Part shown: piece by piece, positions 5,785 to 35,559 of the stretch
How positions within the stretch are numbered: the stretch's first letter is position 1
Layout of the letters: the number at the start of each line of letters is the position of its first letter
Assembly (NCBI GenBank): GCA_038087875.1
Contig: CM075979.1
Coordinates: forward strand, 75,826,001 to 75,890,000
Length of the DNA stretch: 64,000 bases
DNA from: Malacoraja senta
Lineage: Eukaryota
Reading direction: 5' to 3'
Notes under the pieces: model-generated
Database searches by the model: none
What the model was told of the DNA's origin: nothing
Seen by the model: only the letters and a program-made list of their open reading frames with translations
Program-made: the position numbers and the translations under genes

Positions 5785-5965
5785 GTAAGTAAAGCTAAAT
5801 GCATTGTCAAGTTTGGTACAGTACGTTGTGGTGTTGAGTGAAGACAGGGTAATGAAAGTGAAATGAAAATATTCAGTGACAATGGCTTCTGCTACTAAAT
5901 GCAACACAGTGAGAGCAGGACTGAAGAATTATGCTTTCTGGTCTTCTGACATTCATTCTGTTCTT

Positions 5966-7412
5966 GAACTTGGAGAGGTATGGAATTAGAGGAATAGTAC
6001 TGGACTGGATTAAAAGCTACTTAAGTAACAGGCAACAGTTTGTAAATCTGGGTAGTCATAATTCTACATGCTTGGACATTGTGTGTGGTGTACCACAGGG
6101 GTCAGTGCTGGGCCCAAAATTATTTATCATGTACATAAATTATATTTATAATGTGTCCAATGTCTTGAGGCTGGTTTTGTTTGCAGATGATACAAATATT
6201 TTTTGTTCTGGGGAAAATTTAAAACAGCTATTGGATAAAATAATAAAAGAAATGGGTAAATTGAAAATATGGTTTGATAGGAATAAAATTTCATTAAATC
6301 TGAGTAAAACTAAAATAATGTTATTTGGTAATTGTAGAATAAATACACTAGTAAGTATAAAGATAAATGGGGTGGAAGTTGAAAGAGTGCATGAAAATAA
6401 ATTTCTTGGGGTTATAATTGACGATAAAATAAGCTGGAAATCACATATTAAACATGTAAAATTAAAATTGTCAAAAAGTATCTCTGTATTATACAAAGCC
6501 AAGCAAGCTCTGGATTACAAATCACTCCGTATTCTTTATTGTTCATTAATTTTACCCTACTTAAATTATTGTGCAGAAGTCTGGGGTAATAATTATAAAA
6601 ATTCGATACACTCATTAACCATGATGCAAAAAAGAGCAATTCGTATTATCCATAATGCTAAGTATCTGGGTCATATGAATCCATTATTTTTAGTCAAAAT
6701 TATTAAAATTAGAAGATTTGGTTACATTCAAAACAGCTCAGATAATGTTTAGGGCCAAAAATAAAAATTTACCTGGAAACATTCAAAAATTATTTAACGA
6801 GCGTGTGGGGGGTTACAATTTAAGAGGAATATTTAACTTTAAGAAACAAAAAGTCCGTACGACTAGAAAAACCTTTTGTATTTCGGTTTGTGGAGTAGGA
6901 GTGTGGAATAAATTGAACGGGGAATTGAAGCAATGCACAAACATGAATCATTTTAAAATGATATATAAAAAAATAATTCTCAAGGGGTACAGGGATGGAG
7001 GGGATGGTTGACAAGTGGGGGTTGATGTTTATCTTGCTTTACTATTGTTTACTTATGTTTGGGTACTTCAGATATGAAGTTTGTATGTACATAATAGTTG
7101 TATGTATATATATGTCTGTAGGTATTATGGGAAATTGCCTAGGGTAGTATTATTATTAGTAATGAATTGATTTTTAAATATGGTAGAAGTGTTGGGGAAA
7201 AGGGGTGAGATTTAATAAGTTATTCTTTCACTCCTTTTCGAGCTTGTACAGACACAGAGTTGGACATTGGAACTTTGATTTTGTTCTTGTCATTGCTTTG
7301 TAAATATTGATTGGAATGTCCAATTGTTTGATAATTTCGATTTTGTTAATATTAATGTCTTTAATGTCTTTACTTGTTTGGAATAAATAAATAAATAAAT
7401 AAATAAATAATA
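5966..7412 (+). mobile_element. 5'-truncated AT-rich LINE (L2/Crack-like) RT region with (AAAT)n tail
   Basis: ORFs 5931-6752 and 6718-7011: [39 protein letters not shown]; one frameshift ~6690; (AAAT)n at 7382-7412. Confidence 0.9.
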
Positions 7413-7668
7413 AACATGGATAGCTCGTGGAAGGGACCTGTGGCAGAAAAGCTTGTTGGTGCTAAAGTGATGTGGTAATCAGCATAGCTAAAATGAAAAA
7501 GCAAAGCCAAAGTGAGACTGTCATTAGGGCTTGATTTCTCCTACATTAGTGCCAAACAATTTGTAACATCAGTTGTGCATATCCTGACGTTATCTTCAGC
7601 GCAATCCATTTTCATGACATTACAATAATAACTATTACATTTTCAACAATGTTACTTTTATCTTTTAG

Positions 7669-7719
7669 ATTTTGCAGACAGTTAAAATCCCAAGTCAGAG
7701 GCAAGACACTGGAATTGAG
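7669..7719 (+). CDS. NUP205: NUP205 coding exon 3/32
   Basis: ttttag|..|gtatgt; ILQTVKIPSQRQDTGIE; 51 nt. Confidence 0.93.
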
Positions 7720-8607
7720 GTATGTGTTTGCAAGATAACAGCTGTACTGAATGAGCAGGTGCCCAAAGCTATCAAATATGTGACTAGTATTTCAAAAGAT
7801 TTCTCGCAGTTGCTCAGGATTGGTATTATGCCAGTAATGGAGGATACAGTGTTTCGGATGCTCTGACCAGCTGCACAGGAAGAGAGAGCTGCAGGATTGG
7901 GGAATTAAATTATCCACAGATGGGATGAGAATTAATGTTTTATAGACTTTTCTCACCTTAAAATGGAAGTGCAAATGATGGAAATAATTTATTGTGCCAT
8001 ATCAAAATGTTTCAACTACCCTGCACAATCGTGTTTGTAAAATCACAGATATTTTCAGTAATTTCCAGCACTTGATTCAGACATTATCATTTATTTCGTT
8101 GTTTACATCATCTTTGCAATGCTTCAACATTAATTGGACAATATAAGACGTAAAAAATAGGACCAGGAAAAGGTCATTCAACTTCGAAGAGATATTTTTG
8201 CGTGGCAGGAAATAGGTGAAGAATGAAGTGTGATAACTTGGGGAATTTTGTTTGCCAGCATCCCAAAATGAAATCTATCAACAATCTCACGACAGACAAG
8301 ATCAAAATAGGAAATCAAATGGAGCAATTAATTCCAAAGTTCAGTTACAAAGCATGTATCTCTGTCACTTCTAGATTTGACTGCCAGCTGGTCTTCCTTC
8401 CTTCATCCTGCATACATGTGAAATCATCAATGTCTGCAATTGTATCCTAAAACGGCATGGGCTCCAGCAATAAGACCCTTTCTCAAATCCTTTCATGGTC
8501 TCTTCCTCTTTCACTCGGTAAAATGCTCCATGTCCACACTCCTCCATGGTGTCTACAGTTCTCCATTTCGGATCTGGCATCTATACCTGATTGTACTTAA
8601 AATAACA

Positions 8608-8983
8608 AGGAACTGCAGACCTATACCAGAGATAGAGACAAAATGTTGGTTAAACTCAGCGGGTCAGGCAGCATTCCTGGAGAACATGGATAGGCGATGT
8701 TTCAGGTCGGAACCCTTCTTCAGATTGATTGATCGGTTTTACTTCCTCAGCTATTGGTAAACCTCAGCTGCACAAGCTCTCTGAATTTGCAGAAGTGTTA
8801 TTGAACAGAAATTTTATACTGACCAAAAATAGGAGCAATGAGGTCAGGTGACCAAAAATGTACAAAGGAACTAGTTAAATGCTGCAGGAAGATTTAAAGA
8901 GCTTGTGCATCTGGGGATTTTGAATAGTGAAGTATGTAAAACCTATCAATCAGTCTGAAGAAGGGTTCCGACCTGAAACATCG
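8608..8983. mobile_element. Penelope-derived element with 48-bp inverted repeats (8695-8742 / 8936-8983)
   Basis: cgatgtttcaggtcggaacccttcttcagattgattgatcggttttac and its near-perfect reverse complement. Confidence 0.75.
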
Positions 8984-10593
8984 GGTTCAACAAATGTCTT
9001 GCAACATTCAGCTAGGTTAAAGTATCAGAAACATTTGCCCATTATTGCTCTCTCCTATTTAAAGCGATAGGAACATTAAAGATGGTGAATTATATAATAT
9101 TTAAAATGCAGCAAAAAATGTCAGACAAAATTATTTTGCAATGTTGGGTGGATAAAATATGTCATCCACTTTCTCTAAAAAAAGATTGGATTTAGTAAAA
9201 ATGTGCTAAATCCTCCCTTGAGGTGGATTTGTTGTTGGCCTTTTCTCTTACTGGTCACAGCACTTACAGCTGAAAAAAATATTATAAAACAAAATTATTA
9301 TTGTTAGCTTCTTCTGTAGCCTATAGAGAATACACATTTCTGTATTTAAGATGCACACCTGCTTGGGAAGAGATTGAGTATTCTGTATAATTTCCACATG
9401 GGTGAATCAATTACTGTAATTGTATTCAGATAGCTTGGAATTGATTAATAGCGTGATCCCACTTCATTCTGCAAATCGTGTAGGGTTATCTGTAATATAT
9501 TTTTGAAAACAAACATTTTTAAATTTTGTAAATGGTTAACCACATAATATCTGTGAAAGTCATAAAGCTATGATATATATTTATCCTGGGGTGTTTTCAT
9601 GGTGTTGAATGGCGACCCATTCTGAAGCTGCAGTGTATTAACCTATTCAAATGATAGAAACATAGAAAATAGGTGCAGGAGGAGGCCATTTGGCCCTCCG
9701 AGCCAGCACCGCCATTCATTGTGATAGACAATAGGTGCAGGAGTAGGTGACACTGAAACCAAGGGAGATTTTGGGTTGGTGTACTTACTAGCGGCTGGTG
9801 TATCTACAGTCCTGCTCACAGGTCAGCTCATTATTGTCTTCGGCCCTTGAATTGAATCACAGCAGCCGGAGATGGGCTGAAGGTTCTAATGCTAGCTCGT
9901 TTGTCCTCCAACTCCTCCACTGGACATCTCTGATTGAAATATAGCACTGAATTCATGCCTGGCATAACTGTTGCAGACCATTCATTTGAATGAGGTTTGC
10001 CAACATTCATAAAAAATGCAACTGGCTTGTTTCTTTTTTTAAAAAACGTTTTTTCATTAATTTCTCATAGTTTAAGGTATTTTAATAACTTTTTCATTCT
10101 TAATTACTTAAATACCTGACTTCAATTGTCTCTGCCTCTTGGGATGGCTGAGGCAACAGTCAGCCAACCCTTGAGGTTGATTAGTGTTGTAGATCTGCAA
10201 GAGGTGAGTTTGCTCAAGTGAGTGGCTGGCCGGGTCATACTGATAGCCCTGTACTCTTCAAATGACTTCCGTTGGGATGACAGACTGGGAAATTTTGCCC
10301 TGATGAATGGACACTGAGCTGGGCATTGTGTTTTCCTTTGTTGCTGGGTCTGTTGAGTATTTCTAGCATTTTTTCTTTTCATTTCTAGGCAATTTGGGAT
10401 TCAATTCCCACCTTTGAGAATTTACTATTTTTGTGTGCAGTTTAGGGTCCTCTATAAATGTTAACTTGAGAAATGAGATACAAGCACCCAGATTTCCTGT
10501 TCATGATTCCATTAGTCTAGGTGTGACACAAAGCCTTTTTTAAACTCTTGCTACAGAAACGCCTCCTTTTTTATCTCCTGCTACAAAAATGCT

Positions 10594-10732
10594 TCTCTTC
10601 TTCTTTCGTGTGGCGTGCACAGTCTAAAGTTGTTGGACAACTTGTTCTATTTGATCTTCCGTTTATGCACGTCGAGTTGATTGCATTAGTCGAAACAGGG
10701 CGGACCACGTGAAGGTTGCAATATTCCACCCC
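10594..10732 (-). mobile_element. ~140-bp non-autonomous retroelement (SINE-like) with ribozyme 5' end and (GAA)n tail
   Basis: TSD ACA(A/G)AAATGCT at 10583-10593 and 10733-10743; minus-strand 3' tail GAAAGAAGAAGAGA. Confidence 0.8.
10680..10732 (-). ncRNA. HDV/CPEB3-like self-cleaving ribozyme (predicted)
   Basis: Minus strand reads GGGGUGG-AAU-AUUGCA-ACC-UUCACGU-GGU-CCGCCCU-GU-UUCGA-C-UAA-UGCAAU: 7-bp P1 with G1:U wobble, 6-bp P2, 3-bp P3, CPEB3-type L3, catalytic C followed by UAA. Confidence 0.8.
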
Positions 10733-11310
10733 ACAGAAATGCTGGTTTAGTCCTACTACCTGGTTGCAATTTCTAACTGAACCAGACTTTTCACACTCGT
10801 GGCATTTTATTTGACCAAGAGGTTAACTCTGAGTTGAGCTTCCAATTCCAAATCCTGTTCATTGCCAAAGTCAATACTTCTACCTCCACTCTTGCAATGG
10901 CAACTCTTGCCCGTGTGATCATCACCCCAATTCACAATAGCCTCAGCCTAACTGTCTATTGGCTTCAGGTCTGATAAGCATTTAAAATTAAAATGTTCAT
11001 ATTGGGTTGGGCAGTACAATGTTGGCTCGGCTCGGGACTTTATCCAGGATTTATCTCACATGAATAGTGTGATTGGCATAATTATATGTGGCCAGCAGAT
11101 ATGAAATCCATAATGGCAGCCAGTGTTGGTCTGTTACGCCTGTGATCCAGTTGAATTCTAATTTTATGTTTGTGCATACCTCTGGATGGAAGTGGTGACG
11201 AGGTGAGAAGTTCTTTTGCTCCGAATTATTAAGATCGGGAATGCACTGCCTACAATGGACGTTGGAAGCACTTTCAGCAGGAAACATAATATACGTGATT
11301 AAAAAAGAAA

Positions 11311-12267
11311 ATAATAATAATAATAATAATAGATTTTATTTATATAGCGCTTTTCAGGACTCAAAGTCGCTTTACAATTGAGAGTCAGGAATAAACAAAA
11401 CAAAATAGAGCAGTAAGACAGAGGGGAGGGGAACATGGGACTAAGGGTATGCAGAGGTGAAGAGATGGGTCTTGAGGCGGGACTGGAAGATGGTGAGGGA
11501 CTCAGAATTTCGGACCGGTTGTGGGAGGGAATTCCAGAGCCTGGGAGCTGCCCTGGAGAAGGCTCTGCCTCCAAATGTGTAGAGGTTTGATTTCGGAGTG
11601 GAGAGGAGACCAGCTGATGTGGATCTGAGGGACCGTGAGGGTTGGTAGGGGGAGAGGAGGTCAATGAGATAAGGGGGGGGCCAGGTTGTTGAGGGCTTTG
11701 TAGGTGAGGACCAGGATTTTGTAGGTGATCCGGTGGGAAATGGGAAGCCAGTGAAGTTCTTTGAGAACTGGGGTGATGTGGTGCCAGGATTTGGTGTGGG
11801 TAATGAGTCGAGCGGCTGCATTTTGGACCAGTTGGAGTCGTTTGATGCTGCTGGAATTGATTCCGAAAAGAAGAGAGTTACAGTAGTCCAGTCGGGAGGA
11901 GATGAAGGCATGGATGAGTCTTTCAGCAGCGGGGGGTGTGAGAGACGATCTGATTTTTGCAATGTTGCGGAGGTGAAAAAATAATGTTTTGACAACATGG
12001 CGGATGTGAGGCTCAAGGGAGAGGGTTGAGTCAAGGATCACGCCAAGGTTGCGTGCCTGAGGAGATGGGGAGACAGTGGTGCCGTCGATAGTGAGAGTGG
12101 GGTTGTTAATTTTAGTGAGTGTTGATTTGGAGCCAATGAGGAGAAATTCTGTTTTGCTGCTGTTTAATTTAAGGAAGTTGAGTTGCATCCAAGATTTGAT
12201 GGCTGATAGACAGGAGTTGATATGGGAGAGAGGGGGGTGGGTGGGGACTTGGTGCTGAGATAGATAG
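11311..12267 (-). mobile_element. L2 LINE 3' portion
   Basis: KTEFLLIG, ARNLGVILDS, RLDYCNSLL, LQLVQNAAARL, LHWLPI; (AAT)n tail; probable TSD AAAAAGAAAATA (11302-11313 / 12268-12279). Confidence 0.92.
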
Positions 12268-33649: not shown

Positions 33650-34678
33650 GTATGGTTGCTCTATACATGGATATGATTGTTGTAGGTCATGGAAATGGGA
33701 GTCTGTGAGCAATGTTTTTTTTCCTCTTATGTCACATTTCTGATTATCCAACTGAGGAATCTTGAGCCAAAGAGTGGACTCTAACTCTCAATCAATTAAA
33801 ATAGAGAACAACATAGGGTAAAAGCAAAACATAAAATACTGCTGGAACTCAGTGGGTCAGGAGTAAAATCCTTTCTCCGGTCAAAGTTTGCTTCTGGCAT
33901 CCTATCAGAAAAGGATGGATTTGAACCCATACACGTCCTCCCCACGTTGCAAGCCTATGACTTACATACAGCCCATTCATACAAATTAGTGTTTGTGGAA
34001 TCGGTGGGAAAGATGGGGAAGGATTTACTGGCGGCTGCAGAGCTACATGCAATGTCTGCTACGTGGGAACGGGGCATTGCCATGTGCCTTCACTTTCCCA
34101 ATCTCTCCCCTCCAGTTGTAACAATCATGAGCTGGGACGAGCAGAGCTGGGAGAGTTGAGCAGACTTGCTCTCTCACTCACTGGGTCAATGAAGCCAACC
34201 ATTTCTCCTCCCGTCACAACTGTTTCTGTTCATTTCTGACTGAGGAACAGAATGCTGTCATAACCTGGTGTCTTCCAGTATCCTTGATGTAAAAGACCAA
34301 TATAACAACAGTTCATAATATTTTTCTGCTAATATAGGTCTGCTAGTCTGCTGGAAGTTTAAATTGACTGGCCCACACATTAAGAATGGTCAATTTGTCA
34401 AGAAATGTGAACATAATTCAAATGAGCTATTTAACTGGGAAGTACAATGTTTTTTCATTCTAGCAAGATGCAAGCAGTATTGGCCAATGTTAGAAGCCTT
34501 GATCAATCATGTTTCCTTCTATATCAAACTTAGTGCCACTAAAGCTTATTATAATGCATTCCGTGTTTCTCTGACTGATAGCTCTGACTTCGAACTGATT
34601 CATGGTAGAAAATAGGAATTGTATTTCTGGGTGGGCTGAGTGCAATATCACCTGCTGCCATCAATCATTATGTTGCAG

Positions 34679-34827
34679 GAAAGCAAACCATGTGGGAGAG
34701 ACTCACAGCTCCAGAAGATGATTACACCAAACTGCAAAAGGATAACATGAATATCATAGAGAGTTATGGGGCATCGTTGATGGAGGTTGTTTGTCGAGAT
34801 GCTTGTGATGGGCATGAAATCGGTCAA
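34679..34827 (+). CDS. NUP205: NUP205 coding exon 20/32
   Basis: ttgcag|..|gtaagt; KQTMWERLTAPEDD...MEVVCRDACDGHEIGQ. Confidence 0.95.
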
Positions 34828-35559
34828 GTAAGTATGAGTAAACCACGAGTATGCCCAAAGGCCAAGGTGACCACTGCAATATTAGATTTGTACTCTTCCA
34901 TTTTAACGCCTTTCTCCCACCACAAGCAACTGACGTTTTTCGTTGATATGTTGCCTTCATATATTCACTGGGTAATTGTATCATGTCATGTCATACAAAC
35001 CAACAAGTGGCGGCCTCTGTTCTTGTTCTCTCTTATTAGCTGATCTTCTCATTAGCTGACGAGTCTTGAGACCAAAAACGAGAAATCTGACTGAATTTAG
35101 TTTAGAGATACTGTTCGAGTTCTGACTGTTGGTCAGTGAATCACATCAGAAACTATGGATGTTCATTGAGGACAAAGATGAGCTCTTGTTGACATGGCCC
35201 CTCATTGTTGAATAAGAAAGAAACAAGATATTAGGTTACTCAGTAGAAACAAGAACTACAGATGCTGGTTTACAAAATAAGACAAAGTGCTGGAGTAACT
35301 CGGGTCAGGTAGCATATCGGAAGAATGTGGATAGATGATGTTTCAGGTCGAGACCCTTCTTCAGGTTGGATTAGGTTACTCACCCTGAATGATGTGTGCA
35401 GTATCTTCATTTCATATAGTGTTCTCTACACCTAGCAGATTCAGTTGGGTTGGTTTAAGGGAATATGATAAATTGGAGAAATACTTGCTCCTGGATTCCC
35501 AACCCTAGAACTGTCCCCACATTGCACGATATCTCAGTGAATTGATATTCTCATTTCAG

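Follow-up and report, generated by a model that had tools for sequence, protein, structure and literature searches.

A 139-nucleotide retroposon of the skate Malacoraja senta that begins with a predicted minimal HDV-like ribozyme

What sets the 5' end of a short mobile element in which no promoter can be recognised? This question is raised by a 139-nt insert on the minus strand (10732–10594, letters read directly) of a 64,000-nt stretch of the Malacoraja senta genome (assembly GCA_038087875.1, contig CM075979.1, positions 75,826,001 to 75,890,000), in the following called the window. The insert is flanked by a target-site duplication (TSD) of 11 bp with one mismatch between the copies AGCATTTCTGT and AGCATTTTTGT, ends in a GAA-rich tail, and opens with a sequence that a preliminary description of the locus had read as a complete ribozyme of the hepatitis delta virus (HDV) type. 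The coordinates and letters given there (first nucleotide G1, catalytic C at 10689, insert of ~140 nt, 11-bp TSD with one mismatch, (GAA)n tail) all hold on re-reading. It is likely, in our view, that the element is a promoter-less, non-coding retroposon depending on a long interspersed nuclear element (LINE), and that the 5' end of its RNA is made by predicted self-cleavage at G1. Coordinates of the individual features are collected in Table 1.

That the insert was retroposed had been claimed from its TSD, and exact empty sites in three other organisms now support this. Assembled contigs of four organisms were aligned to positions 10400–10900 (identity at least 80%), and in three of them (B, C and E) single contigs join 10572/10573 straight to 10733. 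In the empty-site contigs X2, X7 and X10, the 11-mer AGCATTTCTGT is found once and is directly followed by AGCAGGAGATA, the element being absent; the flanks of these organisms are ~3–5% different from the window. The run that best matches the window contains the filled 5' junction with zero differences. As three related organisms have the exact empty site, the insertion is lineage-specific and recent. The window copy departs from the majority letters of its family at two positions only (10623 and 10665) and at one polymorphic site (10634). Three properties expected of a retroposon are present, namely a TSD, an orthologous site without the insert, and simple repeats as the 3' tail.

The insertion site sits in a short local tandem repeat with units of ~31–33 bp (GCNTTTNTGT AGCANGAG.. 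AAAAAAGG..; 10530–10593 and 10733–10765), of which two units lie downstream of the insert and a partial unit upstream. Owing to this repeat, another sequence close to the TSD motif lies at ~10552–10561. An origin of the TSD as a by-product of the ~33-bp repeat was ruled out, since the empty-site alleles hold the 11-mer once, exactly where expected.

The insert belongs to a large family. In the DNA runs of four organisms, 6,202–11,407 contigs per run match only positions 10596–10733, and the flanks have single-copy depth. Contigs depart from the alignment at 10732 or 10733 on the 5' side and at 10596 on the 3' side, and the sequences beyond are unrelated (consensus agreement ~0.35); copies are therefore numerous and dispersed and share their boundaries on both sides, a further property of retroposons. 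The expectation that 5' ends pile up at G1 was borne out, the 5' boundary of this family of thousands of copies being G1, and a subfamily with a different J1/2 likewise terminates ...CCCC at G1. The summed word depth of the element, which is not a copy number, exceeds that of the flanks by 4–5 orders of magnitude, and the family comprises at least thousands of copies, probably far more. About 9% of the aligned contigs are at least 99% like the window copy and about half are 90–95% like it, so the family is old with recent activity. Near-identical words are present in the runs of at least nine coded organisms. On the 3' side, the length of the tail differs among copies, as indicated by loose ends that start at 10596 and by plus-strand flanks that open with ...TTCTTCT in the contig alignment.

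One base outside the element also deserves mention. The T just upstream of G1 (10733) is matched by ~47–48% of family copies in all DNA runs, at a base frequency of ~30%; loose ends at 10733 versus 10732 were counted as 80/92, 177/200, 207/221 and 120/130. This excess of T at position −1 might come from the partner endonuclease, if it prefers target sites at which the second strand is cleaved after T.

The boundary at G1 is where the predicted ribozyme begins. The HDV nested double pseudoknot claimed in the preliminary description was confirmed, with 7 of 7 pairs in P1, 6 of 6 in P2 and 3 of 3 in P3, a P1.1 formed by C22–G37, and the catalytic C in place. P1, P2, P3 and P1.1 occur in the HDV order, and the nested part of the fold is also the minimum free energy (MFE) fold of the whole element. 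The key residues of HDV-like ribozymes, namely the G1·U36 wobble, C44 followed by UAA, and U20 and G25 of L3, are all found. As modelled, the fold represents a statistically solid minimal HDV-like ribozyme, for which catalysis is predicted. Its predicted cut site coincides with the 5' end of the family to the nucleotide. The folding energy of the whole element is ordinary (z=0.36), which is not informative because a pseudoknot is expected to give such an energy.

Table 1. Features of the element and its target site (window coordinates)
Feature	Positions	Strand	Basis
TSD, upstream copy AGCATTTCTGT	10733–10743	minus	direct reading
TSD, downstream copy AGCATTTTTGT, one C>T difference from the upstream copy	10583–10593	minus	direct reading
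GAA-rich 3' tail GAAAGAAGAAGAGA	10594–10607	minus	direct reading
3' domain: outer 8-bp stem (10664–10671 with 10614–10621) around a 7-bp hairpin (10627–10643)	10614–10671	minus	MFE folds of window copy and majority-letter copy
53-nt predicted minimal HDV-like ribozyme, G1 (10732) to end of P2' (10680); segments GGGGUGG, AAU, AUUGCA, ACC, UUCACGU, GGU, CCGCCCU, GU, UUCGA, C, UAA, UGCAAU	10680–10732	minus	descriptor; Rfam RF02682 and RF00094 in register; theta-trained model
P1 5' strand GGGGUGG, pairs with 10697–10703 (CCGCCCU)	10726–10732	minus	7/7 pairs, G1·U36 wobble at cut site
P2 5' strand AUUGCA, pairs with 10680–10685 (UGCAAU), outer pseudoknot	10717–10722	minus	six Watson-Crick pairs
P3-L3-P3' ACC UUCACGU GGU, predicted catalytic core with U20, C22, G25	10704–10716	minus	same in three tRNA-adjacent metagenome ribozymes; L3 as in CPEB3
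J1/4 GU, 5-nt linker UUCGA in place of P4, catalytic C44 (10689), J4/2 UAA	10686–10696	minus	theta-like layout

How specific this fold is was assessed with a descriptor. The helices alone are satisfied by 46 sites in the window; once G1, the L3 pattern UYCNCGN and the junction CNAA are required as well, exactly one site remains. Specificity is thus carried by the sequence constraints, because structure alone gives so many sites. Decoy descriptors that require A, G or U instead of the catalytic C returned no site in the window, and no site was found by the descriptor in 400 dinucleotide-matched random windows. An independent covariance model (R1) was built from 42 unique phage theta ribozymes of IMG/VR (52–59 nt), with no skate sequence included. 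On the window, its sole significant match is 10678–10732 on the minus strand (24.3 bits, E=8.5e-4, global), followed by a next match at 10.4 bits, and this score leaves the P2 pseudoknot pairs uncounted. The pairing of P1 and P2 within the theta set is partly circular, as the parser demanded pairing; unbiased evidence for pairing is that of three metagenome loci described below. The element was also compared with Rfam models, as proposed in the preliminary description. The HDV models RF02682 (16.7 bits, gathering score 44) and RF00094 (14.7 bits, gathering score 50) both place G1 at 10732 and align globally in this register, but stay below threshold, and the CPEB3 model gave no match at E<=10 on a 71-nt query. 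A general Rfam scan found no family at gathering level, and no tRNA or other family on the element.

Relatives of the core were retrieved from metagenomes. A scan for family copies, with a pattern in which only GGGG, UUCACGU, CCCUGU and C.AA were fixed and inner P1, P2 and P3 were free, returned only three phage-type ribozymes: L001 1317–1373 (minus), L002 2481–2537 (plus) and L003 228–283 (minus). The start of all three falls on the final base of a tRNA gene within a tRNA array, and a tRNA-adjacent context has been described for phage theta ribozymes (PMC10879173). Inner P1 and P2 are fully paired with different letters in the three, P3 is ACC/GGU in all, and P2 covaries across these independently retrieved relatives. 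All three ribozymes have a CPEB3-type L3 UUCACGU and a GU J1/4, giving a one-pair P1.1. This UUCACGU/GU variant falls outside the published theta motif; TTCACGT is absent from the stored supplementary tables of the theta paper (PMC10879173), and no ribozyme with a UUCACGU core was found in IMG/VR. L002 holds two more theta-like matches at 1298–1346 and 2639–2693.

Together these results bear on whether the first 53 nt resemble an HDV-like descriptor by chance. Very many windows were scanned, helices alone are frequent in the window, and the Rfam thresholds are unmet, as a chance resemblance would allow. Against this stand the empty result in the 400 random windows, an E-value from the independent theta model that is reached before the six Watson-Crick P2 pairs are counted, a fold that begins at the exact base 1 of a repeat family, and a core identical to that of independently found tRNA-adjacent ribozymes. 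We regard a chance match as exceedingly improbable.

Among described ribozymes, the layout is closest to the minimal and theta ribozymes (Riccitelli 2014; Kienbeck 2024, PMC10879173). The size is similar (53 nt in the element, 52–59 nt in that group), the segment order is the same, and P4 is replaced by a linker of 5–6 nt, UUCGA in the element. P3 ACC/GGU is identical, six of seven L3 positions are alike, and a CUAA at J4/2, a 7-bp P1 and the G·U at the cut site are common to both. The commonest theta ribozyme has the order P1, J1/2, P2, ACC, U, CC, ACGU, GGU, P1', GG, a 6-nt L4, CUAA and P2' (PMC10879173). The element agrees with theta ribozymes in the absence of P4, in a length of ~50–60 nt and in its significant score with a model trained on members only. 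It differs in the core motif ACC-U-CC-ACGU-GGU ... GG ... CUAA with its two-pair P1.1, having UC and GU instead: L3 has U21 where theta has C, and J1/4 is GU rather than GG, so that P1.1 consists of one pair and not of two. The cut site also lies elsewhere, since theta ribozymes follow a phage tRNA and cut at its 3' end, whereas the element's ribozyme heads a eukaryotic retroposon and is preceded by a TSD in a NUP205 intron. P4-less theta ribozymes of ~56 nt cleave in vitro and lose activity by a C-to-U exchange (PMC10879173); a P4-less ribozyme of the element's layout can therefore be active. The theta study found none in the eukaryotic genomes that it searched (PMC10879173).

The preliminary description had called the ribozyme CPEB3-type. 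This was right for L3 and for the single-pair P1.1, but the architecture, with its P4 linker, ACC/GGU and CUAA, is that of minimal/theta ribozymes. In the mammalian CPEB3 ribozyme, L3 is UUCACGU at positions 20–26, and P1.1 consists of C22–G37 plus U21·U38 with no J1.1/4; both are the same in the element, with identical numbering to position 38. A CPEB3 primer for mouse, which begins 18 nt from the cut site, has the letters G-UUCACGU-CGC.... The CPEB3 ribozyme differs in having a genuine P4, a length of 67 nt and a single-copy intronic location in mammals, whereas P4 is a linker in the element. An Rfam match, a P4 helix and a location in the CPEB3 intron, by which members of the CPEB3 family are recognised, are all lacking here, the host gene being NUP205. 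The ribozyme is thus a hybrid of minimal/theta architecture with a CPEB3-type L3 and P1.1. It might be speculated, though we consider it doubtful, that a vertebrate lineage has tens of thousands of copies of a minimal ribozyme whose core equals that of CPEB3 in every letter, that ribozyme-headed retroposons were the ancestral source of the exapted CPEB3 ribozyme, and that mobile elements of vertebrates make use of the P4-less theta architecture, regarded so far as nearly restricted to gut phages. A high-copy vertebrate retroposon headed by such a P4-less ribozyme would supply a concrete and testable starting point for explaining where the CPEB3 core came from.

A mechanism by which such an element might propagate can be proposed. 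Source copies would be transcribed within longer transcripts, and the ribozyme would fold co-transcriptionally and cut directly 5' of G1. The cut would free an RNA with a 5'-OH, whose 5' end would be shielded by the compact double pseudoknot. The 3' stem-loop and the GAA-rich tail would then be used by the reverse transcriptase of a partner LINE for target-primed reverse transcription, and the outcome would be copies that begin exactly at G1 and carry TSDs of ~11 bp. Retroposition, the size of the family, its exact boundaries and a complete, significant fold with its cut site at the family's 5' end are shown by the data; that the RNA cuts itself in the cell, that source copies are transcribed by read-through and which LINE is the partner are inferred. 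The folded 3' domain may be regarded as a candidate for the structure that the partner's reverse transcriptase recognises; both private differences of the window copy (10665 and 10623) lie inside or beside its outer stem. No tandem repeats were found inside the element.

Ribozymes that define the 5' ends of non-LTR elements (which lack long terminal repeats) are established (PMC3414825, PMC3185411). In R2, RTE and L1Tc, as well as in the R2 short internally deleted elements (SIDEs) and NARTc, the cut site is the 5' end of the element and a conventional promoter is absent, as proposed here. R2 SIDEs and NARTc are also short and non-coding, have retained the 3' end together with the ribozyme head, and are mobilised by LINEs via this 3' end (PMC3414825, PMC3383444, PMC3185411), again as proposed. 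The ribozymes of R2, RTE and L1Tc are larger, include P4 and are hosted by insects and trypanosomes, and R2 is site-specific for ribosomal DNA (rDNA), whereas the present family is dispersed, very high in copy number, only 139 nt long and hosted by a vertebrate, with a stripped-down ribozyme. Dispersed non-LTR elements of Schistosoma (PMC8501958) carry a small self-cleaving ribozyme at the 5' end too, but this is a twister variant in another host.

The claim that the element is promoter-less was supported by a search for RNA polymerase III (Pol III) A and B boxes, which gave no match on the element even to a relaxed consensus. It is therefore not a classical short interspersed nuclear element (SINE), as these are defined by an internal Pol III promoter derived from tRNA, 7SL or 5S RNA. 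The main rival explanation is nevertheless an internal promoter within the first ~50 nt, which would set the 5' end at G1, the HDV-like fold serving 5'-end protection, protein binding or a dual role as in Pr77/L1TcRz of L1Tc. A precedent exists, since the first 77 nt of L1Tc and NARTc are both a promoter and an HDV-like ribozyme (PMC3383444); GUUUCGA at positions 37–43 is loosely B-box-like, and contigs of RNA libraries are without sign of processing at G1. Such a promoter would, however, need no complete and significant ribozyme with its cut site exactly at the family boundary, and neither the catalytic C nor the G1·U wobble has been lost. Given also the failure to find either box, we consider this explanation unlikely.

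Variation within the family gives additional information. Only three ribozyme positions vary at a share of at least 10% in any of eight runs. G32A (10701; 14–29% of depth) turns U5·G32 into U5–A32 and keeps the pairing, G42A falls in the linker and U45G at the variable position of J4/2, so that all three are at tolerated positions. This pattern is compatible with selection on the ribozyme and does not demonstrate it. In all eight runs, the ribozyme half (10689–10722) has ~1.5–2x the summed contig depth of the 3' half (10604–10654), which is opposite to the 3' bias expected of 5' truncation and suggests that the ribozyme head is common to several families or that divergence is greater in the 3' half.

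These data also bear on an inherited relic, i.e. an internal-deletion derivative of a ribozyme-headed LINE, whose head was kept via full-length cDNA and no longer cleaves efficiently. R2 SIDEs and NARTc did arise by internal deletion (PMC3414825, PMC3383444), and variants in the ribozyme are no rarer than in the rest of the element. Frame 3 after the ribozyme reads as a short open stretch CNQLDVHKRKIK and then a stop, as expected of the end of a LINE open reading frame, and would fit an origin of the element by internal deletion of a LINE. However, a uniform G1 end over thousands of contigs has to be made in every generation, at which an inactive head without a promoter would fail; all core positions are intact in the young window copy, and the ribozyme half is the part with the highest summed depth in every run. 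A relic is, on balance, quite improbable.

Several observations do not favour self-cleavage at G1 followed by LINE-mediated retroposition and have to be weighed against it. The gathering scores of the Rfam HDV models are not reached, mainly because 20–35 nt of P4 are missing. Only a single Watson-Crick pair supports P1.1, a feature shared with the CPEB3 ribozyme, which is slow. Variable sites are no sparser in the ribozyme (3/53) than in the remainder of the element (5/86). A partner LINE sharing the 3' end was not found within the window. Finally, contigs that run past G1 into unrelated flank, compared with those that run past the tail, number 56:51, 46:52 and 35:28 in RNA-labelled libraries and 377:287 in DNA. 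Of the four RNA-labelled libraries, one was flagged as probably DNA and the others may hold DNA or pre-mRNA, and contigs show presence and not abundance; the junction ratios, ~1 in RNA and DNA alike, give no support to cleavage at G1.

As to the partner, the preliminary description had suggested looking for an autonomous LINE that shares the 3' tail. None is present in the window, where neither a second copy nor a related LINE tail was detected elsewhere (at most 3 mismatches, short-word blastn, nhmmer). A LINE fragment lies at 5925–6749 on the plus strand and continues to ~7410; it contains an RVT_1 domain (E=4e-15), and its (AAAT)n tail falls at ~7375–7410. This nearby reverse transcriptase fragment was ruled out as the partner because it ends in (AAAT)n and not in (GAA)n and is unlike the element in sequence.

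In organism B, contigs from two libraries connect 10732 to 10666, i.e. position 67, with one extra base and a fresh G1, at a depth of 363–596. This joint amounts to an incomplete head-to-tail dimer, in which the two ribozymes lie 68 nt apart, and inverted joints (10655/6 to 10722) are found too. Either a subfamily of composite structure or excised RNA of unit length could lie behind the dimer. Propagation might then occur partly via tandem or circular RNA, similar to retrozymes, two cuts releasing a ligatable unit with 5'-OH and cyclic-phosphate ends. Circular retroelements bearing hammerhead ribozymes are known (PMC7761336), and the organism B joint from position 67 to G1 and the inverted joints would agree with such a route. 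The 10732–10666 joint accounts for ~0.5% of the element depth, however, and most of the family, like the window copy, occurs as single dispersed units that have TSDs and tails, which makes this route very unlikely.

The single parts of the proposed element are already known, as ribozyme-headed non-LTR elements with short derivatives (PMC3414825, PMC3185411) and minimal HDV-like ribozymes (PMC10879173) have been described. A high-copy vertebrate family that combines a ribozyme-headed retroposon with a minimal HDV-like ribozyme was not found in open-licence papers and bioRxiv, in line with the preliminary description, whose author knew of no such family. HDV-like 5'-end ribozymes are known from insects and trypanosomes and P4-less versions almost only from phages, and the element would combine both. 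Such a combination would provide a 53-nt ribozyme of near-minimal size that occurs in nature, along with thousands of natural variants through which sequence could be related to function, and would show that a vertebrate element can reach SINE-like success by a route that needs no promoter. Sense-oriented intronic insertions would then cut host pre-mRNAs; an orientation bias is therefore predicted, which would be measurable genome-wide.

The genomic surroundings of this copy were examined as well. On the plus strand, exon-like open frames match the Nup192/NUP205 family, profile positions 525–604 at 1831–2181 and 1427–1463 at 34609–35040. The window thus covers a large part of NUP205 on this strand, and the element lies antisense in a NUP205 intron, outside the NUP205 pre-mRNA. 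Being antisense to its host gene, it is not part of a NUP205 read-through transcript. The window copy is probably a silent product and not a source.

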